Assembly (NCBI GenBank): GCA_015680685.1
Contig: MNCI01002010.1
Span: 124,001-188,000, forward strand
DNA length: 64,000 bases
Direction of reading: 5' to 3'
Source of the DNA: Gnetum montanum
Taxonomy: Eukaryota; Plantae; Gnetophyta
Under the pieces are notes generated by a model that saw nothing but the letters and a program-made list of their open reading frames with translations, was not told the DNA's origin and ran no database searches. Shown piece by piece: positions 2,341 to 64,000 of the stretch. How positions within the stretch are numbered: the first letter of the stretch is position 1; each line of letters starts with the position of its first letter. A program made the translations under genes and the position numbers.

Positions 2341-3208
2341 TGAAACACCGTGAAAATTGCGAGTCGGCCTCAGGCAAAGATTCGCAACTCAGGAAAGAGC
2401 ACATGTCAGAATTCCAGAAGGGAGAACAAGGCGGGGCAAATCAAAGAGACAAGAGAACTTTTTTTAGCACTTGAGCGCATATCACTTTGAGCATAGACAT
2501 AGAGAGTAGCACTTTGGCAATTGTTGACAGCATCACCTTCTAGCAAAACCAGAGCACATTTTGCCTCAGCATCGGCAGCAAGAGCAATCGTTCTTTTGGG
2601 GAAGACACAACTTTCTCCATCAGCGATCATTGGTAGTTCTGAGCAGAAATTACCTAAGGTGAGAAAAGCAGATCAAAGATAGTGAGATCATCTTGCGCGG
2701 TTTTCAGGCTATATTGGTCAGAAATAGTTGATCGATAGATGTCATAGCTTGACCTTCCTTGCATCCCGTCTATGGCCTATGAGGTAGATCGGACTTTTGC
2801 TTGTACAGTTTTCTTGTTGTTTTGTGCTTGCTTTACATCAAGTAATCAGGGTCTCCCCATTATAACATGATATACAAAATATACATTCTTCAAATCAAAG
2901 CGTAGATCTTGAAATCATGCGTTTCTCTCGTGTTAGTCTCTTCTTATCATGTTTAGCATTATCATCATTATAATTTATCTATGTTGTTTTCCTCTCATTT
3001 TTTCACCCATATAAATAAAATCGATCCACGAAATATTCACAGTCTCCATCATTTTACTGATTAGTAAGTCCCTGTCTAATCGACAATACCGTTCAGGGCA
3101 CCATGGATTAGTTTTTCCAGCATAGCCCTTGCGCGGATCCGTGGTCAAAACTATGTACATAGATTTTTATTTGGCATTTTTCAGCTACCGACATTTTCTG
3201 TCGTTACA
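2341..3208 (+). repeat. 5' LTR
   Basis: Starts TGAAACACCGTGAAAATTG, matching the LTR start of the second element at 61455 (minus), and ends TCGTTACA. 2508-3208 aligns with about 16551-17251; a hand-aligned 120-bp sample had 8 mismatches. Confidence 0.9.
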
Positions 3209-3214
3209 TTTTTC

Positions 3215-3231
3215 TGGCACTAGAAGGAGGG
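3215..3231 (+). promoter_or_regulatory. Primer-binding site, complementary to the 3' end of plant tRNA-Asn
   Basis: TGGCACTAGAAGGAGGG, 6 nt after the LTR. It differs by one G>A from TGGCGCTAGAAGGAGGG, the complement of ...CCCUCCUUCUAGCGCCA (tRNA-Asn 3' end as I recall it). Confidence 0.8.
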
Positions 3232-3483
3232 CCTGCTTGGCTCTGATCTGTATTTTTTGGGTAGCCCTGTTAGCAATCCGTACCCGAAACCATAGACATA
3301 ATACCTCTAGGGAAGTTTACGGTAAATCATGTGGTGTAGATCGGTCTCAAGAACGATTCCTTTGGAATCCTACAGGGTAGAAAGCCTATTTGCAATCTTA
3401 TTACTAGCCATCTTTTAGATCCCATTATCAATCATCGTTAATCGCTTTCATCAATGCATTCCTTTTACACAACCACAACCACC

Positions 3484-6400
3484 ATGGTCCCTGCCGATTT
3501 GGGTGCCACATTTGTGAACCCTATCGCTGTCACCAGACCAGCTCCTGGTGTAGCAGGACCATTGTGTCGATCACTAAGATTATAGGGGAAAGATCCCATA
3601 TTTACCATCATAACCCCTAAGGAATACCATTTCATCTGCGTTAAGATCCAGGCAAAGCTTGGCCTTAGCCGAGCCGAAATCGAGGTGAAGCGGAATTTCG
3701 AAATGATCCACCGAGGGGGTCACGATTTCAAACCAACAACCTACGACATCATTCCTTTGACCGAACATCAACATGAAATTATAACATAGTTGGTCATGTC
3801 CAAGAGCCAGGCTATGATGGAACCCCAGAATGGGGAGGAAGAACATGATGAGCTTGCGGCCCAGTCCGAGCACTCATTCCACACTCTGAGCCCCCATACT
3901 TACATAAATCCATCATTCCCGCTCAACAGAGAAGCTTCCCCTCTTAACCCACCCATGAAAACATAGATGCATATCCCTATTATTCCAAAAGCCACTGTGT
4001 ATCCATCTGGGTTACAAGTACAAATACCTCACAATAACATGGGGGTGGTTTCATCACCTTGTGTACTCAGCATTCCGGTAGTGGTTCCAGCGACCACTGC
4101 GTCCCATTTCATCCTGCAAGTCCAACCCCACACCATATCAAAAATGCGCCCAGCACAGACTTTATCACTCCCACCCCCTCCAACTCAATAGATCACCATA
4201 GCTGTTCAGCCACAAACATATGTCCAAGAACCTGCCTCAAGTCAGTGGGCCAACCCTGCAGCGCAACATAACCAGTTCGCGGTGTATGGTGTGTAGCCCT
4301 CGGTCGCACCTGCAACGTAGCTTTCACAGGTGGTCCCTCAGTATACCCATCCGTATCTCGTGCAGCAGGTGGCAACCAACCACTCTTTGCAAACTAGTGG
4401 ATGGTGGTCCTCACAAGCCCCCCTACCTATAGGGATCCCTGCCCAACTAGCAACCAGCCAACCTCTCCCTTCGTTTCCATTTCCTAGCGCCCCCCTCCCG
4501 ATCAAACCTCCAATTCCTTCTACACAGACACCTCCATCAAGAGGTCTAGACCAGGCCTTCTAGCTTATCTAGACTCTTACCAAGGAGGTTCAATGCCTCA
4601 AAGCTATTGGTTTGAATACCATTCAGATCATGGACTTTTACCAGGATGATCCTATTTGTCCATCGGTCCCAATGCTGTCGTTGTCGCCAGGGATGTCCCT
4701 CCCTCATTTTACTAAGTATAATGGGGAGGGAGACCCCCATGCTCACCTGGTCACCTTCAGATCTCAGTTCTTGTTGCTACAATAATGTCCACACATGATT
4801 ATCTGAGTCTTTGCTATGTCTTTGATAGGGAAAGCTTTGGATTGGTACAGATCCCTCCCATGCTCTTCCATCTCAACCTTCGAAGAGTTGCTAACCCAAT
4901 TTGTGACCCGCTTCAAATACAACTTAAAGCTGAAATTCACATTGGATCAGCTCATGGGGGTAAAACAAGACCCGCTTGAGCCAGTCCAAAGGTTCATACA
5001 ACGTTGGAATGCTACTTTGAATGAGATTCGCGAGCCAATCGTAGACTCACATCTACTGGCTATATTCAAAGGAGCATTCAATGAATTTATTAAGCCAAAG
5101 ATGTACTAACTTTCACCCAAATCTTTACACTAGGCCTTCGCTCAAGTCAGAAGCATCCAAGATGCTGCAAAGGCTAGCAAAGACCCAGCATATGTCACCT
5201 ACAGGAATGCTCACAACAAGGCCAAAGATAAAGGTAAGGCGATGACAACGACAGTAGCTGCACTGACTGGAGGTGCAAAGAACAAGATGAAAAAGGCACC
5301 TACAACATCGCCTGAGACCACCACTGGTGCCAGGACCAGCCAACATAGAGCTGCACCTGAAGGCTCCCCCCAACCAAAACCAAACTTTGAGTGTAAAGAT
5401 CGTTCAAAGTACGCATCCTTGCCTATAAAACATTCTGAACTGTTGAAACAATTGTTAGTGACACAATACATTCAACCTAAGAAGGTATGAGAGGAAGCTC
5501 TGAAGCATCACAGACGTCACTATGAACTACTAAAGAACCCTTCTTTACCCTTACCTAACGAACCACCAGTTCCTAGATCTTTCAGGCTGGATTGTTTCTG
5601 TGACTACCATCAGCTATGTGATCATGACGAAGATTACTGCTGGGCGTTGAAGGACGATATTCAACGCATGATCGACGAAGGTCATTTAAAACTAGATGGA
5701 AGTAATCCAACGTGCACAGAAAACCAAACATTCCACGTATATAAGGACCTATTAAATGCAAACAATGCTCCTTATACAATCAATGTGGTGAGTATGGACA
5801 GTGAGTGGAAGAGACCACCAAAACAACCTTTTGTTTTGCGTGTGCCCGCTAGCTCACCAAGGGGGCTAGCCATTTCATCGATAGCCAGGGGGGTCTCAAG
5901 GCCGCCCTTCATTATACGGTCACCTTCTCAGATACACCCTCAGTCATGTAGCAACAGTCAAGCCACGGCTTCATCCGCGCCCATACCTAGGGCGCCCTTC
6001 ATTATCAGGGTGCCAAAACCATAGGCTGCTCCTCTCATGCAGGGGCATACCTCTAGTCAAAACAGCCAACCATCACCTCCCAAGCGAAAGGGAGAGGACA
6101 TACCTATTAACACAATGAAAGACCATTTTATGCTCGGCTTCCCTAAGCCTAGGCCCTTGTCCTCTGCATCTTCTTCTCTACCTCAGAAACAGGACAAAGG
6201 TGCAGAAATACAGCCACCTTCTCTTGGCAAGAAAAAGAGCAACCCTTCGACTGACACTGTTCCACCTCAAGAGATCCATCTCTTGGGACGAATGGAAGAG
6301 GACAAGGGAGACAAAAAACCCAGCCAAGAGAAGGACCTCCTCGACACATTTACACAAGTTAAATAGGCTCTCAAGTAAAAAAACACAACGCTAAGCCTTT

Positions 6401-7262
6401 ATGACCTGCTTATGACATCTTGAGAACACCGCGAGGCTATGGTTCACATGCTGACATCCATATCAGTGGATGAAAGCTTTCCAGTAGAGGAGGAAGNCGA
6501 GAACACCACGAGGCTATGGTTCACATGCTGACATCCATATCAGTGGATGAAAGCTTTCCAGTAGAGGAGGAAGTGATACATACTTTCATGTTTCCTCCCG
6601 AAGTTGAGCAATCTAGGCCTATCTTGCTAACCTTTCATGATGAGTCTGTTAAAGATGATCCTGAGAAAGGTCAGGTCACAACTGAACCTATGTTTATCAC
6701 TATCTGGGTCGGTCAATACCAGATCCGGAGGGTGCACATGGACAATGGTGCAGCTACCAACGTCATTTCCTATTATATCATGGATAGGTTGGGACTGGTC
6801 GACCAGATCACTCCCATGACAATGGCATGTGTAAAATCGTTCAACGGGGCATGGGTTCAAGTCAAGGGGATGGTGCGTATCGATTTTGTGGCGGGAGATC
6901 AATTCCTAATAGACGCCACCTTCTTAGTCGTTGAGGAGATGCCAAGGTTCAACTTGATCTTAGGGAGGTTGTGGTTAGCCTAGCTGAGGGCGGTTTCATC
7001 ACCGATACACCAAGAGATATACTTGCCCTATGCCAAAGGGAAGGTCGTGATATGCGGTGGTGAAATCACCGCCAGGATAGTCAGTAACATTGAAGAAGAA
7101 CGGGCTTTAGAGATAGAAATGACTGATGATCAGACCCATCTCCAAACCCCTCAACAAACTGACATCAATGATGGCAATCTAGCCTTGGCCAACCTGCCAT
7201 TTCCGGATGGCAGCGTAGAGGAGTCAGATCATAAATCCTCTCACCTTTACGCAATGCTCAAC
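3484..7262 (+). pseudogene. gag: Gag and aspartic protease (degenerate)
   Basis: Pro/Gln-rich N-terminus. Retrotransposon gag motifs YNGEGDPHAHL and WYRSLP..SISTFEEL...F..RF (about 4720-5100). Zinc knuckle FCDYH....H....CWALKDDIQRMIDEG (about 5595-5680). Protease RVHMDNGAATNVI...FNLILGRLWL (about 6730-6980). Many stops and frameshifts. Confidence 0.88.
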
Positions 7263-7528
7263 GTAAAGGCTGTTAAAAGCCAATTGCGTCTTAATGGTTG
7301 AACAATGACTTTTGTGCGTGTCATCATTTCTTGGCAAGTTATCGCAGCTCATACTTAGCAATTTTATTTCATACAGTTTTATGTTACATTCGTTTTCGGT
7401 TTGTACGCTTGTCATTTTTCATGCTGTTATATTTCTTGTATGCATGATATTCACATTTTCTGATCACCTTAGTATAATTACGCAGAATTATATACCGCTA
7501 CCATTTATGCTTGTTGTATTATGCAAAT

Positions 7529-7680
7529 GGCCCGCAATGGCCTCAAACTATCTGAGGCCTGCAATGGCCTAAAACTAGTCCTCAAATTATGCAACCGCTT
7601 GTGACAGCCCGCAATGGCCTTAAACTATTCCCTGTTTTACATAGAATCATATGATGGCCTGCGATGGCCTTAAACTAGCC
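7529..7680. repeat. Four copies of a ~22-bp motif GGCCYGCAATGGCCTHAAACTA
   Basis: Copies at about 7529, 7556, 7606 and 7656. Confidence 0.8.
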
Positions 7681-9904
7681 ATTACATTCTATCATTATAA
7701 CTTAGGAAAAATCCTTAACAATTACACTCATGTTTTACAGATAAAAACATAAAAAAAAAACAAATTAATTGACATTAGAAACAACCACTAGGTCTTATAG
7801 CGTGTCTTTTCAATTATTCATAAAACAATACTTGACTCCACATCAATAAAATTATGCGTAAATCAGAATTATGCATCTCCTCTACTGCTACTATCACCAG
7901 TATCTTTTAAGTCCAGATCTAGTCCTAATGGATCGTCCTCTAGTGGACCGTTGTTTCTAGGAAGTACTCTTTCATGAAGAATTTCCTCTTCATGAGGTCT
8001 TTTTTCCAACACCGGCTCCATAGGAGGACGCTCTTCATCACTATGTTCTTCCTCTTGTACTGGTTCCTTAGCTTGCTCGTCTTCCCTATCCTCTTTTGGC
8101 ACCTACATACAAATAACATCAAAGTTAGCATGGATAACACAATTAGAAAAATTTTAGATTTAGTCATATAGAAACTTACTCGCGATGCCTCGGCTTCTGT
8201 AGCAAAAGGAAGCTTGTCCAGGCCAGCCCACAGGTGCTTCATAATCTCTTCCTCCATTAGGTCTGACCACACATCATCTCCCAAGGTAGCTCTAGCCTTC
8301 ACATTCCCTTTCTCCATGCTAGTCCAGCAAGGTGGGTCAGGGAAGAATTTAGGGACTGTAGTTTGGCCCCCAGGGAGAGTCATCTCCCTTTCCGGGGACG
8401 CACTTATAGTCACCTGCTCTTCGAATTTCTTGAAGGCTTCTGATGCTCCGATGACATTCAGGAAGACTTCCAGGGATTGGGCTTTGATGGCAGAATCATG
8501 ATAAAGTTTATGATAAGCGATTCTTTCTTGCATATACAGATGTTTGTGGTCTTTCTCCTTCTACCCCCACTCTTACACACATGCACAATAATCCCTCCAA
8601 TCCTAGATTTTCTAAGCTAGGAGCTCTATCTACATCTACTGCTCTACCAACGCTCGACTGGTTTGTACGCTGTGTTTAATGGCAGTCTAATACCAGGAGT
8701 AGTGGATAATAGCGGTACGCCAATCTTCATCCCTCATCTCCCACGCCTGTAGGAATTCGCACCACGATCTTAGGTCTCCGACCTCTTTGGTCAGAGACTC
8801 TGCCCTATGCTCTGCCCTCTGTAGCCATTTCCAGAGGCTCTCATTTATGCCCTTACTCTCCCATAAGGAGCGTGTCGAGCGTAACGCACATTTACGCATT
8901 TCCTCATAAATGTGACGTGGCACAGCTACCTCATCAGATGGTGGCTCCACTGTGTTCAAATCAATGGACTCCATGGAATCCCATCAAATGTGAGCTCCTA
9001 ACAGAAAAAATCATCAATGTTGGTGGCATATTACCACTGTACAATATCACGAACTTACTACAATCACAACCTACTAGCTCCAGGTTCAATGCACACTAGG
9101 CGCTCGATCATGTCACTGACAACACCTTCCATGAAGGCAAACTTGTCAGGAAAGTCTCTCCATGCTCTGCACATGGTGACAGATGTGAATACCTCCTCTT
9201 CTCCTGTAGCGTAATCGGGTTAGAAGCTTTAATTATTAACATAATTCTACAAAATTTCTAACACGTCCATTACCTCTACTGATGACAATGGCGACTTCGC
9301 CAACATCTTCCACCTCCATTTCCTCTTCATGCACTTGGGTCTGTGCGTCGCTGGTTTCAGCAGCTAGGGCCTCCTCATGCACCAGGGTCTGTGCACGGCT
9401 CACGCTAGCAGACGGGGCCTCTTCTTCCAAAACTGAGGCCCCTTCCCCACGACTTACTATCACTGCCCCTGTTTCAGGGATCAACTACTCTATAATTTTT
9501 ATTGGTCACATTACAACAATCTTAGTATATCATTCCAAACATTCTAAATAAACATTGCGTAATACAGTTTTCAATACATCTCCTTCACGCTTACCAGGCG
9601 GAGGCTTACTCTACTGAATTCTGACCGCCATAGTTCGGCCTACGCCGCTCCCAGGCTTTGCAGAGGCCTCAGTTATACGAAGCCTTTTGCTCTGAGCTAC
9701 AGGTTCCACTATTTTCTCCGCCACATGTTTCCCCTGTGAGGCATCACTAGTGTAAGTAGGCATTATCCCACCTACACTATCGAGGCCTCGCAGACGAGAC
9801 GCCACCAATCCTTTGGTCATTATAGATAGTGACTCCCTGATCCCTTTTGGCAGATCCTACCCACAGATAGTTCCAATGATATGGGTAATCCAAGGTTTGG
9901 ACAG

Positions 9905-10600
9905 CTAGTCTCGGTCTTGTTGCACCCATACCCCATTCCTTTGGATGACTAGAAACTCAGCAAAATGACGAAGGCAAGCTATGAAGAAGGTGTAATGCAC
10001 ATTGAAACGAGACTCAAGTTTCTTGCGAAGCTTGATTATCTCATTGCGCAGCCCCTTAGTGAAATAGCTTGCCCAATTGAATTGGGTCCCCTCTTCTAGA
10101 ACCTCCTGCATAGTACGGGTTTGTTCTATAGAAAAGAACTTCCCTTGCGAGAGTGTTTTGGGGAAGGTCTGGGCCAGGAAAAGGGGATAAATTGTCTTGG
10201 TGACGCCCATTTTGAGTCTTTCGCAAAGAAACCCTTTAGCCTCTTTCGAGACCCTTACCCACTTCTCCAGCCACCTCTGGAAGTCGAGGCTTCTCTTCAC
10301 CTTCTCATTTATGGGAAGGCTGTCCGAGGGGACGCCAAATAGATCTTCAAAGAGCTGAGCATCAATGTCAAAACTTACACATATGTGATGTATGCGCATG
10401 CAAAAATGCTCTACCTTTTCATTGAAGGAATTGACCAGGGTCAGCATTTCACTAGCAGGGACATCAGGATTTACAGCTAAAAATAGCTGCATTAGCCCCG
10501 CTACTTAGATCTTGGTGGTCACCGCAACTAGGGCCGCCGAGTGGCTGAGCTAGCGCTGTGCGTCCTTGATGTTGTCGTAGCGGAAGAGGACGGTATTCGC
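9905..10600 (-). pseudogene. Exon 4 core: PMD/Transposase_32-like plant mobile domain
   Basis: AGLMQLFL...LVNSFNEKVEHF...FDIDAQLFEDLFGVP...FNWASYFTKGLRNEI resembles the PMD/Transposase_32 pattern LV..F......F...IT..DV..LLGLP...Y/FxWG....L...L. Confidence 0.5.
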
Positions 10601-11095
10601 CTCATGGCTGGAAATCGTAAGGGTAATCTCCCACGATTCCCTGACTGAAAAGTGTAAAACATAAGTCAAACGAAAACACTATTACGTAATACTCACAATT
10701 CACAACTACACTACGCAATAATCGACTATACAATAGCCTTACCAGGTCCAAATGGCAAGGGAAATGGTGGAAGGTTCCTCTGCATGTTCTCAACAGTGAG
10801 GGGCGGATCCAGGGTCCAATCATCATGTAGCCAGCAATTCTCAAAAGCCTTAGCATAGCAGGTGGGGTACTCACGCATGTCGAAGCCGATCTACCCTATA
10901 ACACCAGTGCTCACGTTGCTAGTTGAGGTAAACACCATTATTGCTGTTTCGGCCCATGATAATGTATCTCCATCTCCAACTAACCTATTTTCATGAATGA
11001 AAACCCTATATCATACCACATAGGCTTATCTTATACTTTGTAAAAACATAGATAATTGACATATAATAATAATACAGTTAACAAAATTTGCTTAC

Positions 11096-11545
11096 CCGCC
11101 TGTGTAGTACACTGTGCCTTGTGGGTTCTGGAAGTAGGTCAAGACATGGTGAGGCATGAATAGCGTGTTATATGCATGATAACAGCTGAACTGGGCCATT
11201 TCCCAGATCCAATTTAAGCACCTTAAGCCTTGGGCACTGGGTTCTCGGTCCTCGGGATGACCAGTATCGATGGCTCTATCTATCAGGAAGGCCAGAATCC
11301 CTTTTGCAGAACCCACCAGTAGGTGCTCCAAAATGGTGCTGGCGATATCGCCGGACAAATAAGACCACACTATGATGCTATAGTTACACAATAAGAACTG
11401 CAGAAACTCCAGTGCACCCCATCAGAACCATATGGCCTTCCCTTACAACTGTGTTTGCGGGGGAGGGACATTGGGGACGATGGGGTTTATACAACACAAA
11501 ACCCCAACAATATCCAAGACAATCAGAATAGGCTTTAGCGTAACG
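11096..11545 (-). pseudogene. Exon 2: FCP1-homology/NIF (HAD-superfamily, CTD-phosphatase-like) domain
   Basis: KPILIVLDIVGVLC...GKAIWF*WGALEFLQFLLCNYSIIVWS...STILEHLL...DTG...LRCLNWIWE...YHAYNTLFMPHHVLTYFQNPQGT follows the NIF motif order LLVLDxxGxL / xRPxxxEFLxF...Y.I.VWS / LKxLxxxW / NTLLxDD....NP. Confidence 0.7.
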
Positions 11546-12083
11546 CTATACAGAAATCCCAATACATAGATCAACTTATAGATTTACATTGGCATAATAT
11601 GTGCAAAAAACATACAAACTACACCTAGTTATCCATGCCAAAATCACTCAAACCCTTGCAACAACGCAAGGTTCGTCCCTGACAACGGTGATAGATGCAA
11701 CCCCAACAAACCCTCGCATTAACCCGAGGTCCATAATTTGAAATATAAATTTATGCAAAAGATACTATGAAAAATAAATACTAAATCAACATAAGCATGC
11801 AAGGAATGGCCTACCAGTTCAAAGGTGTAGGGTCACGCACATCAACCACTGCTTGCTAAACGCGCTCTAGATTTCCTTGCACCTCATCAATTTTGGCCAA
11901 TTTTGCATTCTTCCTTTTGATTTTAGGTGCCATTGTAATAACTTCAGAATTTTCACGGTTTAGCACTTGCAAATCTTTGCAACTCACATGCTTTAATCCT
12001 CTGCTCCTTCTCCTCTTGCTCAGCAACAATTACGAATTCGAATTCACAATAGCCGGTAGCTTGTTCTCACCAAAAACCACTTA

Positions 12084-12090
12084 CTTATAT
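12084..12090 (-). promoter_or_regulatory. Candidate TATA box for the antisense gene
   Basis: Minus strand reads ATATAAG about 150 nt upstream of the ATG at 11933. Confidence 0.3.
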
Positions 12091-12346
12091 GCAAGGAATC
12101 ACCGACTTGATATTCGATTTCAGCGGGACTTCCCTAAAATGGAACCCAAAAACTAGGATATTAATGTGGTGGACATCACATGCACCACTATCCAGAATGA
12201 TGTTAAACTACCACATCTTATCGCCTCGTAATCGGGTAGCATTAATTACAACCTTTTTACAATATTCAAAATTCTATTAGCTTTCCACATTCGACAACAT
12301 CACATCATCTTCCTCCTAATCATTTATGTACTTGGCTATTTTGCAG

Positions 12347-15300
12347 GGCAGACGGGAAATGGATGCAACATTTTCAGCACCTCTAACTTTGACAGGCCCA
12401 TACGGGAGGGTAGTTAGGCAATTCGACCCTACACTAGTAGAAATTAACTCCCCTTTGGATGACGTAACCATAGCCACGTCGAAAACGTCCCCAGAATGGC
12501 CAGAATAGTTAACGCGCATGCTAGATCTGGAGGCTGGGGACATAACCGAAGACCCCCTCACTGACGTTTCTATCGTCATGCATATGGGTGAAGCTAAAAC
12601 GCTTAACGTCAGTTCTTTACTAGACCAAAAAATGCACGATTCTATAAAGCAGGTCCTACGAGACAATATCACAGCATTTGCATGGTCGTATCAGGATATG
12701 CCAAGACTAGATCCCAGGTTAATCTAGCATAACATAATCTTAGACCTGTAAATTAAGCTACGGAAAATCCAAGTAGTTAGACAAAAGGTACGGAAAATTA
12801 AGCTATAAATCACGCTAGCCATGCGTGATAAAATCACCAAAGTGTATCAAGCTGGTTTCATCCGTGCGGTCAATTACTTGGATTGGGTATCTAACATTTT
12901 AGTCATCCCAAAGAAGACTAAAAGCATATGCATCTGCATAGACTTCCGAGATTTGAACAAGGCCACAATCAAAGATAACTTCCCACTAACGAGTATCGAC
13001 CAGCTAGTTGATACAATAGCTGGGCATGCGCTTCTATCCTTTATGGATGGTTTCTCAGGCTATAATCAGATTCACATCAACCTAGAACATCAATTGACTA
13101 CAACATTCATGATGCCCTGGGGCACTTTTTGCTACACTATGATGCCTTTTGGTCTAAAGAACGTCAGAGCAAAGTATCAACAAGCCATGACATACATCTT
13201 TAGCGACTACCTCTTAGGAAGACTAAATAATTATGTAGACGATATAGCTGTCAAGTCCTTAAAGTCAGAAAATCATTCAGAAGACCTAGAGTTAGCCCTC
13301 AAAAGATTCTCCAAATACAAGCTCCAGCTTAACCCAAAGAAGTGCGTATTCGGAGTCAAAATCGGATGCATGCTGGGGTTTGTGGTGTCGGAAAGTGGCA
13401 TACAAGTTGACCCTGATAAGGTCAAAGCCATTGTCGAGTTAATGCCTCCTACAGACCTCAAGCAATTACGCAGGTTACAGGGATGATTACAATTTATACG
13501 CTGATTCATCTCAAGATTAACCGACAAGCTACACCCTATGCAGCATCTGCTCAAAAAATGGGTTAATATCGAATGGACGAAAGATTGCCAACATGCATTT
13601 GACAGCCTAAAACAGGAACTTCAACACTTACCCATGGTTTTCCCGCCACAAAGGGACCTACCATTTTACATTTACCTTGCAACTTTGGACGTAGCGTTAG
13701 CAGAATTACTTTGTCAAAGGAGGGATGATGGGTCAAAACTGCCCATCTACTACTTGAGTCATGCTCTATGTGCATACGAGACAAGGTACAATGAAGTTGA
13801 GCATAATTTCTTAGCATCAGTATTTACACTCAAAAGGTGTAGACATTACCTTTTCCATAGCCAGGTTAACATCATCTATAAAAATAACATCCGTAGGACC
13901 ATTACGCAAAACCTATACGAGAGTAGTAGGATAGCTCCCTGAAAGGCTATCACGATAGAATTCGATCTGCATTATATTGGCCAATCTTCTAAAGAAGGCC
14001 AAGCGATAGCTGACCAGTTAGTAACGTCACCAGTTAATAACTAGGTGACTATAGAACCTGAGTTCCCTAATGAACATGTACATAGTTTAAGCCCTGTCTT
14101 GATAGGCCCCGAGGTGACGTTGTATTTCGACGGAGCTTCAACCACCAAAGGTGGTAGTGCTGCCACTGTTATTATGCTATCGCCTGAGGATGTGCATCTA
14201 CACTCTTATCGATTGACCTTCCCTTACACGAACAATGTGGCAGAGTACAAGGGGCTCCTCAGGGGATTACTAACTGCTAGCGAACTCGATGTTCGACACC
14301 TTGCAATTAGGGGTGATTCGATGTTTGTCATAAATTAGATCACAAGAGTCTACGCCTGCAAGGTTATACATTTACAGCCCTGCTGCGATAAGGCTAAAGT
14401 TCTTCTAAGATGATTTGCGACCATCGATGCCTAGCATGTGCCACGCACGAACAACACACTAGCCAATGCACTAGCTACACTAGCTTTAAACGTGCCTTCA
14501 TATCTTTTTGACACCTGTCCTACATTTATAATAGACTGCACAGATCCTGTCATTCAGGAAATGCAAATATCTTCTCTTCTCAAGGAAAGCACGCCAGAAT
14601 GGTACGACGATATTAAGACTTGCCTCCTACAGGACGAGCTACTGCCTGAATTGACACGTGCATAGAAAGATGCAATTCGCAAGTGGGCTAAGCAATATGT
14701 CATCATAGGAGACAGTACTCTTTGTAGACACTCATTTGACAGTGTGCTTCTTACTTGCGTCGACAAAAACCAAGCACAACATATACTCGGCGAAGTTCAC
14801 GAGGGACTATGCAGAGGCAATGTAGCACCACGGGCTATGGCTCTAAAAATCCATCGCTTAGGATATTACTGGCCGAGCATGGAAAAAGATTTCCTGACAA
14901 AGGTTAAAACTTGTGACATGTATCAGCATCACGTGAATCTCATACACGTGTCACCTATGGAATTACATACAACGCAGATAACATGGCCATTTCAATGATG
15001 GGGACTGGACATCATAGGCCCCATCATGCCAAAATCTTCCACAGATCATAGCTTCATCATTATTGCCACTGAGTATTTCACAAAGTCAGTAGAAGCTGTT
15101 CCCCTACGGAAGATCACATCTCAACAGATTTTCCATTTTATCTTAGACAATATAGTAACCATATTTGGTCTCTCGATGACTATCGTGACCGACAATGGGC
15201 CACAGTTTAGTAGCACGGAAACCAGATCCTTCTGTAATAACCTTGGCATTAAACAATCTTTTTCCTCCCCCTACTACCTGCAAGTGAATGGTCAAGCTAA

Positions 15301-15840
15301 AGCAATGAACAAAGTGATCATCAACCTGCTCAAGAAAATGCTCGATGGCAACAAGAGACAGTGGCATAAAAAATCCTATATGTGCTATGGGCATATCGTA
15401 CTACATGTACGATGGCTACAGGTAGTACGCCCTATAGCCTGGTTTATGGGTCTGAAGCAGCGCTGCCTCTCGAGTTGCAAATTCCTTCTCTGAGAATGGT
15501 TCTCTCCACCATTATAAATGAGGCTCAGCACACCGAGTCTTGGATAATGGATTTGAATTCAGTAGAAGAGAAGTGAATACAGATGCTTGATACTATTGAA
15601 AAGTATCAAGATAAATAGAGACAGAAACATCATCACAACCTTCAGCAGCACCCAATCAAGAAAGGAGATCTAGTTCTCAAGGCCGTGCATGAACCAGTAG
15701 GCAAGTTCTCTATGAATTGGGAGGGCCCTTTCTTGGTGACTGACGCATACAGTAACAGAGCATTCAGACTAGTAGACGTCAATGGTAGTGAATTACCAAA
15801 CCCTGTAAATCATGTATATCTGAAGCAGTATTACATTTAG
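12347..15840 (+). pseudogene. pol: Pol: RT, RNase H, additional RNase H (aRH), integrase (degenerate)
   Basis: RT: CIDFRDLNKA, LSFMDGFSGYNQI, MPFGLKN, YVDD. RH: PIYYLS...ETRY. aRH at about 14110-14490: LYFDGAS...TNNVAEY...IRGDS. INT: HEGLC, GYYWPSM, WPFQ**GLDIIGP, IVTDNGPQF, QVNGQA, WEGPF. Stop at 15838-15840. Confidence 0.95.
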
Positions 15841-15854
15841 AGGCATCTTTAGTG

Positions 15855-16290
15855 TGGACATCAAGTATGCCAACAAACATCCGCTATGATGCTAAACTAG
15901 CATTGACCATCAACCACGATACTAAAATGGCACGTTGTGACCGTCTGCTACGACGTAAAATTGGCAGTGTTGTACAGGTCCATCAAGATGAAAAACTGGC
16001 ATCTTTTGCATGCGTCTGCCACAACGCTAAACTAGCACCAGCTGTCTGCTATGACATAAAACTAGCAAAGGTAATCAACCGTCTGCTAAGACGTAAAACT
16101 AGCATAGCTTTGTCCTTGGGTCATGACGCGAAACTGACATCCATAGCAGGGTCTACTGAGACCATAAATCAGACACACCATCATCCGCTACGATGTAAAA
16201 CTAATATTTTTTTGTCCACCCAGACTTTAAACTGGGACCATGGTCTGCTGAGACTTAAAACCAGCAATGATAGTCTACCAGGACTTAAAA
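15855..16290 (+). repeat. Degenerate ~39-bp tandem repeat in the element's 3' UTR
   Basis: Recurrent CCGTCTGCTACGACGTAAAACTRGCA-like units. A homologous array lies at 62630-63290 (minus). Confidence 0.8.
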
Positions 16291-16550
16291 ATGGTACTTA
16301 CAGGTTGCCGCCATGCAAATCAAGCAAGCATGATCATCTTTGTACAGTTGCATGACAAATATGGTGGGATACGGGGATAGTCCCAGTGTTGCCACCCCAC
16401 CGGCATCCTACTGATTCCTCGGATGAGCTGAGAGGCACGCTACTAACCCCTCGGAGATGCTGCCACTGCACCCACTGTAGTAGTGGTACTTATAAGAGTT
16501 TAGTCTCACCGCTCAGAGTCCCAACAAAATCCTCATCGACAATTATTGAC

Positions 16551-17251
16551 AGCATTTGGCAATTGTTGACAACATCACCTTCTAGCAGAAACAGAGCACA
16601 TTTCGCCTGAGCATCAGCAGCAAGAGCAATCGTTCTTTTGGGGAAGACGCAACTTTCTCCATTAGCGATCATTGGTAGTTCTGAGCAAAAATTACCTAAG
16701 GCGAAAAAACTAGATCAAAGATCGCGAGTTTTTTCTTGTACAATTTGCAGGCTCTATTGGTTAGAAACAGTTGATCGATAGATGTCAAAGCTTGACCTTC
16801 CTTGCATCCCATATTTGGCCTACGAGGTAGATAAGACTTTTGCTTGGACAATTTTGTTGTTGTTTTGTGCTTGCTTTACATCAAGTAATCGGGGTCTCCC
16901 CATTGTAACGTGAAATCCAAAATATACATTCCTCAAGTCAAAGCGTAGATCTTGAAATCACGTGTTTCTCTCGTGTTAGTATCTTCTTATTGTGTTTAGC
17001 ATTATCATCATTATAATTTATCTATGTTGTTTTTCTCTCATTTTGTGACCCATCTAAATAAAATCGATCCACGAAATATTCATAGTCTTCATCGTTTTAC
17101 TAATTAGTAAGTCCCTGTCTGACCGTCAAGACCGTTCAGGGTGCCGCGGATTCGTTTTTCCAGCATAGCCCTCGCACGGATCCATGGTCAAAACTGTGTA
17201 CACAGATTTTTCTTTGGCATTTTCCAGCTGTCAACATTTTCCATCGTTACA
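16551..17251 (+). repeat. 3' LTR, truncated at its 5' end (PPT and LTR start missing)
   Basis: Matches 2508-3208 and ends CATCGTTACA. No TGAAACAC start or polypurine tract upstream. Confidence 0.88.
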
Positions 17252-17399: not shown

Positions 17400-18290
17400 T
17401 ATGGAATTATTTCTACCTTAGTGGCTTCTATTGACACATAGTCCTAGAGACATACTGGGTTTAGATTATGTTTGGATGTTCTTGTACTTTAAATATTCAT
17501 ATACTCTTATGCATACGAGCATAGTTTTGGAGAATACAAGATTTCATATTGGCTATTAAACATATCTTGGTGGTACCTATTCACAAGAAAGATTATATAG
17601 TGAAGAGGATACTTGAATGGGGGGCATGGTGTCTCAACTCACTAGCCTACAATAGTAGTTTTGGAGATTCTAGGATTTCATGTTAGTTGTTAAACATCCC
17701 TTAGATATACCTAGTCATAGATAAGATCATATTGGGAAGAGGTTACCTAATTTTTCAACCTACTAACACGCGTTACATATGTACTTCCTGTTATCTAGAT
17801 ACATGTGGATTGACCACATGATACCTTAGGTTGTTACAAGGATGGAATGATTTGACATGTTTTTAAAATGCTCACCCACTCTTATGCATCCAATAGTAAT
17901 TTTGGAGAATCTAGGGTTCCTTTTTGGCTATTAAAATAGCCTTGGTAGTATTTAGTTATAGGTATGATCATAATATGAAGAGGATAATTGGTATCCCAAC
18001 CTAGTAGTATGCATTACATATGTACTTCATGTTGTCTACACAAAATGGGGGTTGATCATATGATGCCTTGCATTCTCCCAAGGATGGGATGATTTGACAT
18101 GTATTTTAAATATTCACCTACTTTTATGCATGTAAGAGTGATTTTGGAGAATCTAGGATTTTATGTTGGCTATTAAACATGTCTTGGTGGTACCTAGTCA
18201 TAGACATGATCATACTCTATAGAGGATGCCTAGTATTCCAACGTGGTAGCATGCATTACATATGTACTTCATGTTGTCTAGATGCATTAG
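17400..18290. repeat. Degenerate ~240-bp tandem repeat that resumes at about 20690-20880
   Basis: TAGTTTTGGAGAATCTAGGATTT...TGGTACCTAGTCATAG-like units at about 17522, 17656, 17897 and 18138. The motif CCCAACCTAGTAGCATGCATTACATATGTAC recurs at about 20700-20790. Confidence 0.7.
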
Positions 18291-24339: not shown

Positions 24340-25420
24340 TATATAAAACACATAGAATAGGTATCAATCTGGGTTTCTTAGTCGAGTCACTATTTAAAGT
24401 TTTCTCCAAGGCTTAGGTTTTTAATTCTATAACTTGATTTTCAGTGTATATTAAGGGTATGATCATTTGAGAAATTATAGAATAGGTGTTAATGAAGGTT
24501 GATTAGTCAAGGCACCATTCAATTTTTATTTGAAGTTTTTTCATATGCTTAGGTTCTTAGTTCTAGAACATAATGTTCAGTCTATATTAAGGGTATGCTC
24601 AGCTAAGAAGCCATAAAGTAGGTGTTAATGAGGGTTTCTTGGTCAAGCTACCCTTCAATGTTTTTGTAATTTTTTTTCAAAGCTTAGTTTCTTAGTTCTA
24701 GAACATAATTTTAACTATGTATTAAGGATATGCTCAGAAGAAAAACCATAAGACAAGTGTCAATGAGGGTTGCTCAGCCAAGTGGCCCTTCAATGTTTTT
24801 TAAATTTTTCTCCAAACATCAATTTCTTAGTTTTAGAACATAATTTTCCGTCTATATTAAGGGTATGCTCATCCAAGAAATCATAAAAAAAATGTCAATG
24901 AGGATTACTTGATCGAGTCACCCTTCAATTCTTTCCTAAATGTTTTTCCAAGGCTTAGTTTCTTAGTTCTAGAACATAATTTTTAGTATGTATTAAGGAT
25001 ATACTCATAAGAAAAACCATAAGACAAGTGTCAATGAGGGTTTCTCAACCATGTGGCCCTTCAATTTTTTTTAAATTTTTCTCCAAAGATCAATTTCTTA
25101 GTTTTAGAACATAATTTTCCATCTATATTAAGGATATGCTCATCCAAGAAATCATAAAACAAGTGTCAATGAGGATTACTTGTTTGAGTCACCCTTAAAT
25201 TTTTTCCTATTTCTTTTTCCAAGGCTTAGTTTCTTAGTTCTAGAACATAATTTCTAGTTTATATTAAGGGTATGATTTTCTAATAAACCATACAAAAAGT
25301 GACAATGAGGGTTGCTCAACCGAGCCATTCTTCAAGTTTTTCTTGAATCTTCTTCAAGGCTTATTTCCTTAGCTTTAGAACACATTTTTTAGTCTATATT
25401 AAGGATTGATTATTGAGGAA
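24340..25420. repeat. ~135-bp tandem array, about 8 units, with a ~271-bp dimeric pattern
   Basis: TTCTAGAACATAAT-like anchor at about 24425, 24561, 24696, 24831, 24967, 25102, 25238 and 25373. Confidence 0.9.
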
Positions 25421-25549
25421 ACCTCAAAAATTGAATAGAAAGCCTAGTATTTATAGGATGAAAAGGTAGGAAACCTCAACCTATAGTAATAGATTTGATA
25501 ATCCTAATAAATTTAAAAAGTGATAGTCCAAATAAATATGATATTTGCA

Positions 25550-26500
25550 ATAGCATTCTAGATCATGAGAGTAGTATCACCCATTGCGACTAGGTAGGTT
25601 TCTCATTCATGCATGTCATTTTTTGAATGATGATTGAGTGACCATGAACTTCCATAGCCTTACAAGATTCCAGATCATGAGAGTAGCATCATGCATTGTG
25701 AGTAGGTAGGTTGCTCATCCATGAATGTCCTTGCTTGCATAATTCTCTAGGGATGAGATACTATGAAATCCCATAGCCTTGTAGGATTTTAAATCATGAG
25801 AGCAGTATCATCCACTATTATTAGATAGGTTGCTTATTTGTGCATGTTCCTATTTTCATGATTCTATAGGAGATGGCTTATATGAATTTTCATAGCATTA
25901 CATGATTCCAAATTGTGAGAGTAGTATCACCCATTATGACTAGGTTGGTTTCTCATTTGTGCATGTCCTTATTTGCATGATTCTATAGGGACTAGCCTAC
26001 ATGAACTTCTATAGCCTTATAGTGTTTTCGATCATGAGAGTAGTATCATCCACTATGATTAAATAGGTTTTTCATCTATGCATGTTCTTGATCGCATGAA
26101 TCTATAGGGACTAACTTACAAAAGCTTCCATAACCTTTCAAGCTACTAGATCGTAAGAGTAGTATTATCCACTATGATTGGGTAGGTTGCTCATTTGTTC
26201 ATGTCCATGTTTACATGATTCTATAGGAACTAGCTTACATGAACTTCCATAGTCTTATAAGATTATAGATCGTAAGAGTAGTATCACCCATTATGACTAG
26301 GTAGGTTACTCTTCCATGCATGTCATTGTTTGAATAGTAATTAAGGAACTAGAAACTTTCATAGTCTTATAGGATTTAAGATCACAAGAGTAGTATCACC
26401 CATTATGTTTAGGTAGGTTTCTCATGTGTGCATGTCATTATTTAAATTATGATTGAGTGATCAAATTACATGAATTGATCTATACTAGTCTATACGTATT
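25550..26500. repeat. ~119-bp tandem array, about 8 units
   Basis: GAGAGTAGTATCA-like anchor at about 25568, 25679, 25798, 25917, 26036, 26155, 26274 and 26386. Confidence 0.9.
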
Positions 26501-60110: not shown

Positions 60111-61455
60111 TGTAATGATAACGTTCACGTAATGAGAAAGATCAGATCCAAGGAATATGCGTAATTCCAAGATCTAATACTTAATTTAAAAGCTAATTAT
60201 ATTGAAAATAATATTCTAGTGGTGGATTTTGTTTATCTTCGTGTGAGATATGCACGGAACAACAGGAAAACTGTAGAAAAGGAAGAACAGAATGGAGGTT
60301 GATCTACGTCATAAACCAAGGGTGGAATGCAAGGAATGTCAAGCTGAGGAGTTTGTTGATCAACTATTTCTAATCAATAAACCCTGTTAATCACCTCTAG
60401 TGATGTTTCAACTACTGATGTACTCAATTTCTTCTCAAAGCTACTAACAATCGTTGGTGAAAAGGATGATCTTTCCGCCAAGAAGACTAGTTGCTCTTGC
60501 TGCCGATGCTCAGATAATGCCTTATGCTCTATGTTTAAGAAAAAGGAAAAGTCCTTCTATTTGAAAAAGTGAAAAGGCCCTCTGTTTCGTTTGTCAACTC
60601 GAGTATTTATAAGTTCAATAAGCATAGTCTCAAGGACACGTGTCTCGAACTTTCAAACACCATTGACTTGAGTTGTTAAACTGGAGATGTCATATTTCGC
60701 TTTGAGGGCGAGATGTGTTGTAAACCACTTTTGTTGAAACTACCTTATGGTTACGCTGTGGTGCCTTGACACGTATTGTCACATGTGAATGACAAGTGTG
60801 CGTTTGGCACTGCTTTGGCTAACCTTGTACAACATTACGCTCGTTTATGCTTCATCGTGTAGCAAAGTGAAATGAGCAAAGTCAGTATGCATTACGCTTA
60901 TTGACACTACGAAGCGTCATAGAGCATAAGAATGGTTAGCTTTTACCGTGTTATGCTTTCTTATGCTCTAGAGCGTAACAAAGCGTAAGGCGACCAGTGC
61001 TTCTTTTAAAGTTGAGTTGGGACCTTTTACAACTCATTACGCTGCTTTGCGTAATTGAGCGTAAATACAACTCTGATCAAAAGACTTGACAAAATGTGTG
61101 ACAAGTCATAGATCGCTGTTTAGGCTTTAGACTTGTCATGTCAGCTACCGCTTGAACTTCTGCTGATTTCATTCCTTCAGTAAGTTGCCTTTGTTGCTTC
61201 ATGTAAGCACTACGCTGAGCATCGTGATGTTGTACTGCATAATGTAGAGTGAGAAGTATGTTGAGCCTCATGATGCTACATTGCGTAATATAGCGTAAAC
61301 ATGAGCAACAAAGTTAGAAAATTTCTAAGAAATTTGGGAACTTGCTGTTGCATGGTTTTTTTATGTTATTCTATCTTCTGAATTTCTGCCATGCACCCTT
61401 TGCCTGAATCATGAGTCTTCGCCTGAAGCCGATCCACAATTTTCACAGTGTTTTA
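60111..61455 (-). repeat. 3' LTR of the second element (about 1345 bp)
   Basis: Minus strand starts TAAAACACTGTGAAAATTG (compare TGAAACACCGTGAAAATTG at 2341) and ends TATCATTACA. Shares GCATCGGCAGCAAGAGCAA with the first element's LTR. Confidence 0.85.
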
Positions 61456-61457
61456 AT

Positions 61458-61468
61458 GGCCCCTCTTT
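61458..61468 (-). promoter_or_regulatory. Polypurine tract
   Basis: AAAGAGGGGCC on the minus strand, just before the LTR. Confidence 0.8.
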
Positions 61469-62629
61469 GTTGACGTTTAGAGGGCTTGCCTGAAAGACGT
61501 TGACAAAGAATACGAAACACCGGATTGGTAGAAGTATCAACGATGTACGTCAAATTTTGCTCAGGTGTTACCTTGTCAATCTTAGAAGTGCAGGAGTAGG
61601 AAAAATAGGAGATGGAGTAGTAGAAGAGGTATTTGTGCAGACACAAAAGGAGAGAGGTTCGGGCAAGGTTCAAGGGAGTGCATGTAGATTTTCACGAGTG
61701 ACATGTGAGGCATTCTCCTGTGATTGTGTTTGCATGGAGTTATGCCATCATTGTGTAAACAAGAGGGGTTGCATGGGTGAGTTGTGTTACACTTGCACAG
61801 CCTGGATGGGTTTTTTTACATCCATTTTGCCGAAACCCCAAATTTTTTTTTTGCTTTGTTAGGTGAGGTGCGTTACGCTAGTTCATGGGCTTGACTATAA
61901 TACAGATGTGAAGTGCTTAGATTGCGTATGCACATTTTGCATGAGGAGAGTGGATGAAATGGCTAAACAAGGGAGAGATATGAACAAAATGTTGGATTAT
62001 AAGGGAAACTAGAATTGCACTTTTCGATAGATAGGGTGACCTGAGCAGCCATCTTAGAATGTCGTTGCTACCTTGCCATTTTGGTGAACGTACCTCGAAT
62101 GACACTCCCATAACAAGTAACCTGCAAATGTAAAAGCAAATAGAGGATACCATTGCTTAGCTTCGTTGTTGAGGAGGTTGTAGAAACAAGCATCCTCCAA
62201 GGTGAGAAGGAAAGAGTGAGCCATTGTTGAGTAACCGTAGCAAGATGCTAGAGTCCCAGCTTTGATGCTCGGCCCCATAAGCTACCATGAAGAATCAGAC
62301 CTATTGTGCCTAGTTGTTTATGCAAGGATCCTGCTAGGTGAATCTGTGAAGCTAGGGTCTGATAGTGATGATGCACAACAACTTGATAGATCGAGGTGCA
62401 TGGAGATCCTGTCGAGGCTCCGGACGACGAAGATCGATCTCTCAGAGGTACTACCACTGAAATGGCTACAGTGACAACAGCTCCGAGGAATCAGTGGAAT
62501 GTGTTCTGGCATATCCAAGGAATCAAAAGAATTCCTATGAGGTGGTGGTGCTAGGAATGTCTCAACACTACACCTTTTCTATTTTGCAACCGGACAATGA
62601 TACACATGTTGTGCTGGTGGTCTACAAGT

Positions 62630-63290
62630 TCTAGTTTTAAGTCCTGGTAGACTGTTCTTGTTAGTTTTAAGTCCTAGCAGACCATGGTCCCCATTTAAAG
62701 TCTGGGCGGACAGAAAGATGCTAGTTTTATGTCATAGCAGACGGTGGTAGAGCTAATTTATGGTCTCATCAGACCGTGTTGTGGATGTTAGTTTTACGTC
62801 ATGACCTAGGGACACGTCTATGCTAGTTTTATGTCTTAGCAAGTGGATGCTTACCTTTGCCAATTTTATGTCATGGCGGATAGTCTATGCTAGTTTAGCA
62901 TCATGGCGGACACGTGGAAGAGACGCCATTTTTATGTATTGGTGGACCTGTACAACAACGCTAATCGTACGTCGGAACAGACAATGGAGACTTGCCAATT
63001 TTAAGTCGTGGTAGATGATTAGTACTAGTTTAGCATCATGGCAGACGTGTGCAAGAAGTGTCAGTTTAGCATTGTAGCAGACGGTCGTTGCCAGTTTAGT
63101 GTCGTAGTGGACGCATGCAGAGAATGCCATTTTTACGTAGTAGCGGACCTGTGCAACATGGCCAATTTTACATCATGGTAGACTTTTGTACATTTTCCAG
63201 TTTAGCATCGTAGCGGATGATGAGCAAGCTTGCCAGTTTAGCGTCATAGCAGACATTGGTGAAACTTGCTAGTTTAGCATCGTAGAAGAT
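62630..63290 (-). repeat. ~39-bp tandem repeat in the second element's 3' UTR
   Basis: Recurrent CCAGTTTAGCATCGTAGCAGAC-like units on the plus strand, homologous to 15855-16290. Confidence 0.85.
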
Positions 63291-63324
63291 GATTGTATAC
63301 CTGGGATTAGTATGAAATGCATGA

Positions 63325-64000
63325 CTAGATGTAATACCTTTTTAGATATATGTGGTTCACAGGATTTGCCAATTCATTGCTATCGATGTCTGGCAGCTTG
63401 AACACATCGCTTCCATACACGTTGACTACAAAGAAAGGGCCCTTCCAGTTTGCAAAGAATTTGCCCACTGGTTCATGAATGGCCTTGAGAACTATGTCTC
63501 CTTTCTTGATCGGACACTGCTGAATATTATGGTGGTGTTTTTTCCTCTATTTATCTTGATACTTTTCAATGGTATCAAGTGTCTATATTCTCTTCTCTTC
63601 TACTGAATCCAAATCCATGATCCGAGACTCGATGTGATGAGCCTCATTTATAATTGTGGAGAGGACCATTCACAGAGAAGGGATTTGTAGTTCGAGAGGT
63701 AGTACTGCTTCAGATCCATAGACTAGGTTGTAGGGCGTATAATCCGTAGATGTTCTAGATGTGGTACGGTACACCCATAGCACATAGAGGATCTTCTCAT
63801 GCCACCGTATCTTGTTACTGCTGAGCATTTTTTAAGCAGATTGATAATGACTTTGTTCATTGCTTTAGCTTGACCATTTGCTTGCGAGTAGTAAGGTGAG
63901 GAAAAAGACTATTTAATACCAAGGCTATCGCAAAATGATTTGGTTTCGACACTACTAAATTGTGGCTCGTTTTTAGTGACAATAGTAATTGGGAGACCAA
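63325..64000 (-). pseudogene. pol: Integrase core and C-terminus of the second Tat element
   Basis: GLPITIVTKNEPQFSS...FSSPYYSQANGQAKAMNKVII...TPYNLVYGSEAVLPLEL...WKGPF. Stop at 63327-63325. Confidence 0.93.

Follow-up and report, generated by a model that had tools for sequence, protein, structure and literature searches.

Plant long terminal repeat (LTR) retrotransposons have been described as nearly intron-free, and the extra open reading frames (ORFs) recorded in them all precede gag or follow pol (PMC6317226, PMC7264820, PMC12786077); a survey of plant elements classes such ORFs only as lying 5' or 3' of gag-pol (PMC6317226). In the Tat lineage of Ty3/gypsy elements, the antisense extra ORFs described sit between pol and the 3' LTR and are mostly of the Transposase_28 type (PMC7264820, PMC11963269). 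The Ogre and Retand clades of this lineage are marked, in angiosperm elements, by an added RNase H (aRH) between RNase H (RH) and integrase (INT) (PMC6317226), and Ogre elements possess an intron between protease (PR) and reverse transcriptase (RT) that is spliced out of some transcripts only (PMC6317226, PMC12786077).

The DNA analysed here (the window) is a 64,000-nucleotide stretch of contig MNCI01002010.1 of Gnetum montanum. At 2508-17251 it contains a Tat-lineage Ty3/gypsy copy, bounded by two direct-repeat LTRs of 701 bp each, in which the PR and RT coding regions are separated by a gap of ~5.1 kb. We conclude that this element is probably an old, dead copy of a high-copy, Ogre-like family, whose PR-RT gap carries an eight-exon antisense accessory gene of ~1085 codons. 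The original prediction had proposed for this DNA a multi-exon gene in antisense orientation within the PR-RT interval of an LTR retrotransposon, and both the gene anatomy and the positions of the surrounding domains support this. Its statement that known Tat antisense ORFs typically lie between pol and the 3' LTR also agrees with the literature (PMC7264820, PMC11963269, PMC6317226). The parts of the gene, and of the gap that holds it, are given below.

11934-12346, minus strand: the antisense gene's candidate promoter and 5' leader, placed by inference
11815-11933, minus strand: exon 1, with the ATG and a basic start, MAPKIKRK, resembling a nuclear localization signal; premature stop at 11858
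11096-11545, minus strand: exon 2, with a NIF/FCP1-type (HAD-IIID)-like domain; premature stops at 11445 and 11424
10743-10984, minus strand: exon 3; premature stop at 10893
9595-10644, minus strand: exon 4, the largest, containing a 199-aa ORF at 9908-10504; five premature stops
9274-9489, minus strand: exon 5, acidic, with internal repeats; premature stop at 9487, at its start
9075-9203, minus strand: exon 6, free of stops
8180-8997, minus strand: exon 7; eight premature stops, of which seven form a cluster at 8563-8689
7869-8102, minus strand: exon 8, acidic tail; terminal stop at 7871-7869 and AATAAT downstream at 7818
7263-12346, plus strand: PR-RT spacer and putative Ogre-type sense intron, 5084 nt, with GT..AG ends and an in-frame join
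7530-7681, no strand assigned: short repeats of ~25/50 nt (direct-repeat family D1), the number of which varies between copies

The exon-intron anatomy is well defined. As predicted, the start peptide MAPKIKRK is present at 11933, and all seven minus-strand introns (70-269 nt) begin with GT and end with AG. Base composition follows the same boundaries: GC content is 31.5% over the introns (24-36% each, with 34-47% U) and 48.5% over the exons (44-56% each). When GC content was scanned in 60-nt windows blind to the gene model, troughs appeared in all seven introns, and low-GC windows made up 457 of the 807 centred in introns vs 29 of the 3199 centred in exons. The in-phase joining across introns is partly a product of the model building behind the original prediction; the composition contrast, together with the RNA hints described below, is support that is independent of it.

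The reading frame was examined exon by exon, with the phase set by the summed lengths of the preceding exons. The model frame requires no frameshift and contains 19 stops in total, vs 68 and 73 in the other two minus-strand frames and 57±7 (minimum 34) in 2000 shuffles, and in every one of the eight exons it is the minus-strand frame with the fewest stops. Because the frame is so much poorer in stops than the other frames and the shuffled controls, the structure is a real decayed gene and not a chance string of ORFs.

The open frame of ~1085 codons that had been claimed is not open. At the coordinates given above, the joined frame comprises 1086 codons with 18 premature stops, distributed over exons 1-8 as 1, 2, 1, 5, 1, 0, 8 and 0, and the copy in the window is therefore a pseudogene. 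TAG accounts for 13 of the 18 premature stops, and this fits transition-driven decay. By our own estimate, 18 stops in 1085 codons is close to the neutral decay expected since insertion, so the gene may have been whole when the window copy inserted. An additional intron at 8561-8689 was considered for the clustered stops of exon 7 and rejected, because the GC content of this segment (0.40-0.42) is not intron-like and its flanks share the frame; the cluster at 8563-8689 is more plausibly read as decay.

The next question is whether this interval, the cassette, belongs to the retrotransposon family or only to the copy in the window. Logan contigs from one DNA run of the same species were aligned to 7100-12600, where 22,986 contig pieces cover all 30 bins. 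The summed contig depths over the cassette are of the same order as those over the PR and RT flanks, and no contig joining PR directly to RT is listed among these pieces. The cassette thus belongs to a high-copy family. Between the window and the DNA reads, 254 differences occur in 5501 nt of spacer (4.6%), and at 143 of these the window has T or A against C or G in the reads. The two LTRs (2508-3208 and 16551-17251) are 88.7% identical over 702 columns by blastn, a divergence of 11.3%. The spacer value is about half of this, as expected if the cassette arrived and decayed together with the element copy. A repeat search around the cassette found no terminal inverted repeats, LTR-like repeats or long direct repeats bounding it, and Pfam and NCBIfam found no transposase, RT or other mobile-element domain in the cassette pieces; the earlier statements that flanking LTRs or inverted repeats are lacking, and that nothing marks a nested insertion, are thereby borne out. 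Copies do vary internally: many DNA-contig joints fall in 7550-7700, and the exon 5 region differs between copies, with a DNA joint at 9333-9414. One rare DNA contig of run X1, of depth 8.8 vs thousands, joins 12217 back to 7743 with a single A between them, so that the cassette region's two ends meet head to tail; a tandem or rearranged copy may be its source.

Hints of expression come from three RNA runs carrying the same species label, from which reads were kept at 88% likeness or above. No RNA read is 99% alike to the window, so the reads come from relatives and not from the window copy. Poly(A) reads from relatives that are 88-95% alike fall on exons. We compared the 30-letter consensuses of loose read ends with the window by hand. 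At 9101, a poly(A) RNA consensus passes from the end of exon 6 into the first four letters of exon 7, whereas DNA contigs of the same subfamily continue into GT. At 9471, the poly(A) RNA before exon 5 has neither the AG nor the AT-rich intron; it is GC-rich and resembles the end of exon 4. These consensuses are hints of splicing at two junctions in diverged relatives. Run X11 shows a strong skew towards first mates on the plus strand over 10044-12435 and on the minus strand over the RT flank, 12436-12600. This flip would correspond to opposite transcription on either side of ~12400 if the library is stranded.

The same reads allow a limited view of selection. Random change is expected to give ~3 replacements per silent change; in seven 30-letter exon stretches of relatives compared with the window, the codon differences are 19 synonymous and 25 residue-changing. 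Over the motif I stretch of exon 2, the relatives read KPILIVLDL and the window KPILIVLDI despite 8 base differences in 30, and a stretch of exon 7 keeps W-E-S-x-x-I-N-E across 14 base differences. At least one stop of the window copy is absent from the transcribed relatives. These short, hand-read stretches suggest past purifying selection between subfamilies.

Domain searches used the exons and their stop-free pieces one by one. For exon 2, each of the top three named Atlas clusters is of the PF03031 NIF type (0.86-0.89), the best sharing 175 features, and NCBIfam gives a colinear match to TIGR02245 HAD_IIID1 (E=0.027; residues 5-103 on profile positions 52-149 of 195). Exon 2 also has a motif I start of the hhhhD type. 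The complete motif I, DxDx(T/V), is absent from the window copy, which is decayed and reads L-D-I-V-G-V without the second aspartate; the relatives' reads over this motif give L-D-L. At the position expected for motif IV, no acidic pair was seen in exon 2. For this exon, Pfam, PDB and homolog searches all returned nothing. We consider a NIF/FCP1-type (HAD-IIID) domain in exon 2 to be weakly supported.

No family was recognised in the remainder of the predicted protein. Pfam, applied to 19 antisense and sense pieces, assigned no family to any antisense piece at E<=1, including TRP28 (PF04195), and NCBIfam returned only the weak HAD_IIID1 match. A phmmer search of PDB with the 109-aa piece gave nothing at E<=10. 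A reading of exons 3-4 as a plant mobile domain is unsupported: the pieces 10729-10890, 10553-10678, 10467-10601, 9908-10504 and 9614-9856 gave no Pfam match to PF10536 at E<=1, and HMMER returned only spurious repeat hits. In Atlas, the exon 3-4 region matches plant clusters without a name, with DUF1985 as a faint lead. Five HMMER hits of the 199-aa ORF among 1.84 billion protein representatives were judged spurious, the two inspected being multi-repeat proteins. A metagenome scan with the 199-aa ORF found nothing, and a metagenome locus retrieved with the 109-aa ORF was rejected as a bacterial contig sharing the word FLIDRAID by chance. Single-sequence AlphaFold models of the 199-aa piece (pLDDT 40) and the 109-aa piece (55.5) are too poor for a fold search. 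These blank protein searches say little about family copies or family-wide conservation, because a control search with the element's own RT shows that the collection contains no copy of the family: among 690 matching proteins none exceeds 59% identity (55% at full coverage).

The gap that holds the gene has a form of its own. The PR frame extends to 7262 and is followed by a sense donor at 7263 (AAC/GTAAAG, the slash marking the boundary). The sense acceptor is TTTTGCAG, followed by G, with its AG at 12345-12346. Joining 7262 to 12347 keeps the frame; the RT frame itself begins at 12320, only 27 nt ahead of the acceptor. By its form, the PR-RT gap is a putative Ogre-type sense intron, and the antisense gene, which fills most of the spacer, would thus lie within the element's own intron. 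The original prediction placed the gene correctly between PR and RT and overlooked this sense-intron form.

At the RT side of the gap, a TATA-like TATAAG occurs at 12089, 156 nt 5' of the antisense ATG, as had been noted. The idea that the gene has its own promoter finds this motif in its favour and nothing further: no cluster of read starts was seen in the mapped reads over the candidate promoter and leader, 11934-12346. On the minus strand of the candidate leader, a minimal ATG-stop occurs at 11990-11995, ~60 nt before the main ATG.

We propose that the gene would be read from a promoter of its own adjoining the RT side of the gap, and that its transcript would be spliced and polyadenylated. 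Its introns, being antisense to the genomic RNA, would be invisible to the spliceosome there and survive reverse transcription, so that each new element copy would inherit the intron-bearing gene. The logic by which antisense orientation shields introns from loss in the genomic RNA, already set out in the original prediction, is sound as an inference. The sense transcript, if left unspliced, would serve as genomic RNA and GAG-PR message; alternatively, it would lose the whole gap, gene included, joining PR to RT in frame. The predicted product has a basic N-terminus, the NIF/FCP1-type phosphatase-like domain, a large middle without a family and an acidic tail, and our tentative view is of a nuclear, non-catalytic binding factor serving the element.

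Several observations weigh against this account. The gene model has been read from a single cassette copy, and that copy, given its stops, is unable to make the protein. RNA reads are very few (65, 18 and 296 in the three runs) and mostly aligned in part only; they lack strand assignment, with mates in both orientations on the interval. Joints at the seven introns did not reach the reporting threshold in any of the three runs, and neither a read over the sense joint 7262/12347 nor a reported joint there was found in the mapped runs. The splice hints at the two junctions are based on 4 and 12 consensus letters, and at 11090 nine reads of run X11 pass from exon 2 into a diverged intron 2, i.e. 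unspliced. Of the claim of a spliced minus-strand gene, therefore, the hints at two junctions in relatives' reads stand, against one retained intron and no reported joint. The TIGR02245 match scores 14 bits vs a cut-off of 192, and the NIF assignment falls under every curated threshold. Furthermore, no relative of the 199-aa piece was found among the 1.84 billion protein representatives, and a word-based homolog search with the 109-aa and 206-aa pieces gave nothing.

Among the other explanations, the one that survives best is that the gene is a passive passenger: an ancestor of the family took up a host gene once, as DNA and with its introns, and the gene has since hitchhiked without serving the element. 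Exon 2 does resemble a cellular family, NIF/HAD-IIID, short U-rich GT-AG introns are what a plant host gene would be expected to bring, and gene capture by retroelements is known (PMC7264820). However, captured genes are usually present in one or a few copies (PMC7264820), whereas this interval occurs in the same abundance as PR and RT. The number of stops agrees with decay that began when the window copy inserted, not with a longer neutral history, and in short stretches where relatives have diverged by 25-45%, residues are retained through synonymous changes. HMMER and word-based homolog searches found no host paralogue either. We therefore regard the passenger explanation as unlikely.

A more specific form of the accessory-gene account, which we consider rather doubtful, is that the family encodes a nuclear CTD-phosphatase-type (NIF/FCP1) pseudophosphatase from a spliced antisense gene placed in the element's sense intron. 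Such a protein would bind phosphorylated host targets, e.g. the RNA polymerase II tail or silencing factors, and thereby favour transcription of the element or blunt its silencing. Removal of the 5-kb intron from the sense RNA and antisense transcription of the gene would then compete on the same DNA, and this competition would set the balance of genomic RNA, Pol translation and accessory protein.

It is very unlikely that the spacer is a non-coding antisense unit, whose RNA acts through double-stranded RNA or silencing and for which the long frame has lost, or never had, any importance. Regulatory antisense transcripts of retroelements are known (PMC7264820, PMC12786077), and the interval carries RNA reads with mates in either orientation, but this explanation leaves unaccounted for the stop depletion in one frame across eight exons, the exon/intron composition contrast and the synonymous-biased differences from relatives. 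Most improbable is a nested insertion, an unrelated mobile element or fragment landed in reverse in the window copy or in a few copies: large plant genomes contain many such events, the interval is present in high copy number and the rare contig joins 12217 to 7743, but the cassette lacks bounding repeats and any mobile-element domain, and its divergence from family reads is what would be expected had it come with the element.

The preferred reading thus remains a decayed antisense accessory gene belonging to a Tat-lineage family. The features of the host element outside the gap are as follows.

2508-3208, plus strand: 5' LTR, 701 bp, matching the 3' LTR by blastn and ending in TTACA
3967-7262, plus strand: GAG-protease coding remnant, with stops and one frame change
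4807-5106, plus strand: Retrotrans_gag, PF03732 (E=3e-9)
6576-6980, plus strand: Asp_protease_2 (E=0.012) and gag-asp_proteas (E=0.052), weak matches covering nearly the full profile
12347-15840, plus strand: RT-RH-aRH-INT coding remnant, from profile matches
12809-13483, plus strand: RVT_1 (E=2e-20)
13505-13939, plus strand: RT_RNaseH_2 (E=9.5e-23)
14045-14335, plus strand: aRH, with profile matches to RVT_3 and RNase_H
14666-14995, plus strand: Integrase_H2C2, profile match
14999-15490, plus strand: rve, the integrase core (E=1.5e-11)
16551-17251, plus strand: 3' LTR, 701 bp, matching the 5' LTR by blastn and likewise ending in TTACA

The GAG-PROT-RT-RH-INT order together with aRH places the element in the Tat lineage (non-chromovirus, OTA), and no chromodomain was found among its profile matches. 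The aRH at 14045-14335 lies between RH (13505-13939) and INT (14666-15490), the arrangement of the Ogre clade that is shared with Retand. The protease region shows a D-N-G motif. Every plus-strand coding frame of the element is interrupted by stops, which fits an old copy.

Further observations concern the element and its surroundings. At 6422-6573, a 77-nt unit is present as a tandem duplicate with 98% identity and an N at 6497, which is either a real duplication or an assembly artefact; since 77 is not a multiple of 3, it moves gag-PR into another frame. The stretch between integrase and the 3' LTR, 15860-16350, is internally repetitive and gave no family match. A 187-aa ORF at 15792-16352 shows 58% protein identity, in one frame, to a relative at 62585-63040. 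This is part of the integrase-to-LTR portion of a diverged relative from the same element group, on the minus strand at 60301-64000, with DNA 74-77% identical and protein pieces 58-79%; this relative leaves the window edge before its PR-RT region. Tandem repeats of 242 nt (2.6 copies, 17650-18280) start ~400 nt past the 3' LTR, and satellite-like arrays with 135-nt and 119-nt units occupy 24393-26393. An Rfam scan of the whole window gave no match.

The window copy is dead, and its value lies in being a map of the layout. If our reading is correct, a seven-intron gene carried through reverse transcription by virtue of its antisense orientation would be a natural counterpart of the antisense-intron reporters, and its placement in the element's own PR-RT intron would add a second layer. 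Retroelements would then be able to hold complex, host-style genes, and a phosphatase-like fold would be added to the few accessory domains recorded for plant retroelements. The layout would also make it possible to test how sense splicing and antisense transcription are linked to element success in a large genome.

Comparison with described systems suggests how the layout could be understood. Our literature search found no retrotransposon in which an antisense gene with introns occupies the PR-RT interval, and none with a NIF-like domain, and the impression that this layout had not been described held for the plant transposon literature searched. One close resemblance is to Ogre, with which the element shares two frames split exactly at PR/RT, an in-frame GT..AG sense spacer and aRH between RH and INT. 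Identity to the nearest RT relatives of the element reaches only 55% at full coverage. The Ogre spacer averages 274 bp and is non-coding, whereas the present one has 5084 bp and a gene on the other strand. Ogre elements also have a forward extra ORF upstream of gag, often with a plant mobile domain (57% of elements); here, the plus-strand pieces between 3408 and 4782, in frame with gag, gave no Pfam match for such an ORF1 or domain. In Retand elements, 2.9-6.6 kb separate pol from the 3' LTR, and of the antisense ORFs in this long region 97% are TRP28; on this defining 3' region the present element falls outside Retand.

The antisense 3' ORFs (aORF-3R) of Retand, Grande and RIRE2 are alike in belonging to Tat elements and in being family-wide antisense accessory ORFs with their own promoter, and for the Grande antisense ORF a nuclear protein has been reported (PMC7264820, PMC11963269). 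They differ in their location between pol and the 3' LTR and in being mostly TRP28; the present gene occupies the PR-RT interval, is split by seven introns and gave no match to TRP28. The likeness of exon 2 to CTD-phosphatase-like proteins of the NIF/FCP1/SCP (HAD-IIID) group consists of weak colinear matches and the hhhhD start of motif I; the differences are matches below curated cut-offs, the D-I-V-G-V of motif I in the window and the missing acidic pair of motif IV.

Survival of an antisense intron has a precedent in HBZ of HTLV-1, a spliced antisense retroviral gene whose intron survives because it is antisense to the genomic RNA. HBZ and the present gene are both minus-strand coding genes of a retroelement with surviving introns; HBZ, however, has one intron, a promoter in the 3' LTR and a bZIP product, belongs to an animal virus and has no sequence relation to the gene described here. 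Retrotransposition reporters illustrate the converse, since only introns that are sense to the element RNA are removed in the cycle (PMC12786077): the reporter intron, sense to the element and antisense to its marker, is lost, whereas the introns here, antisense to the element, are kept. Taken together, the locus combines two known kinds of arrangement, the Ogre-type split and the antisense accessory gene, and the placement of an intron-bearing gene between PR and RT appears to be new.

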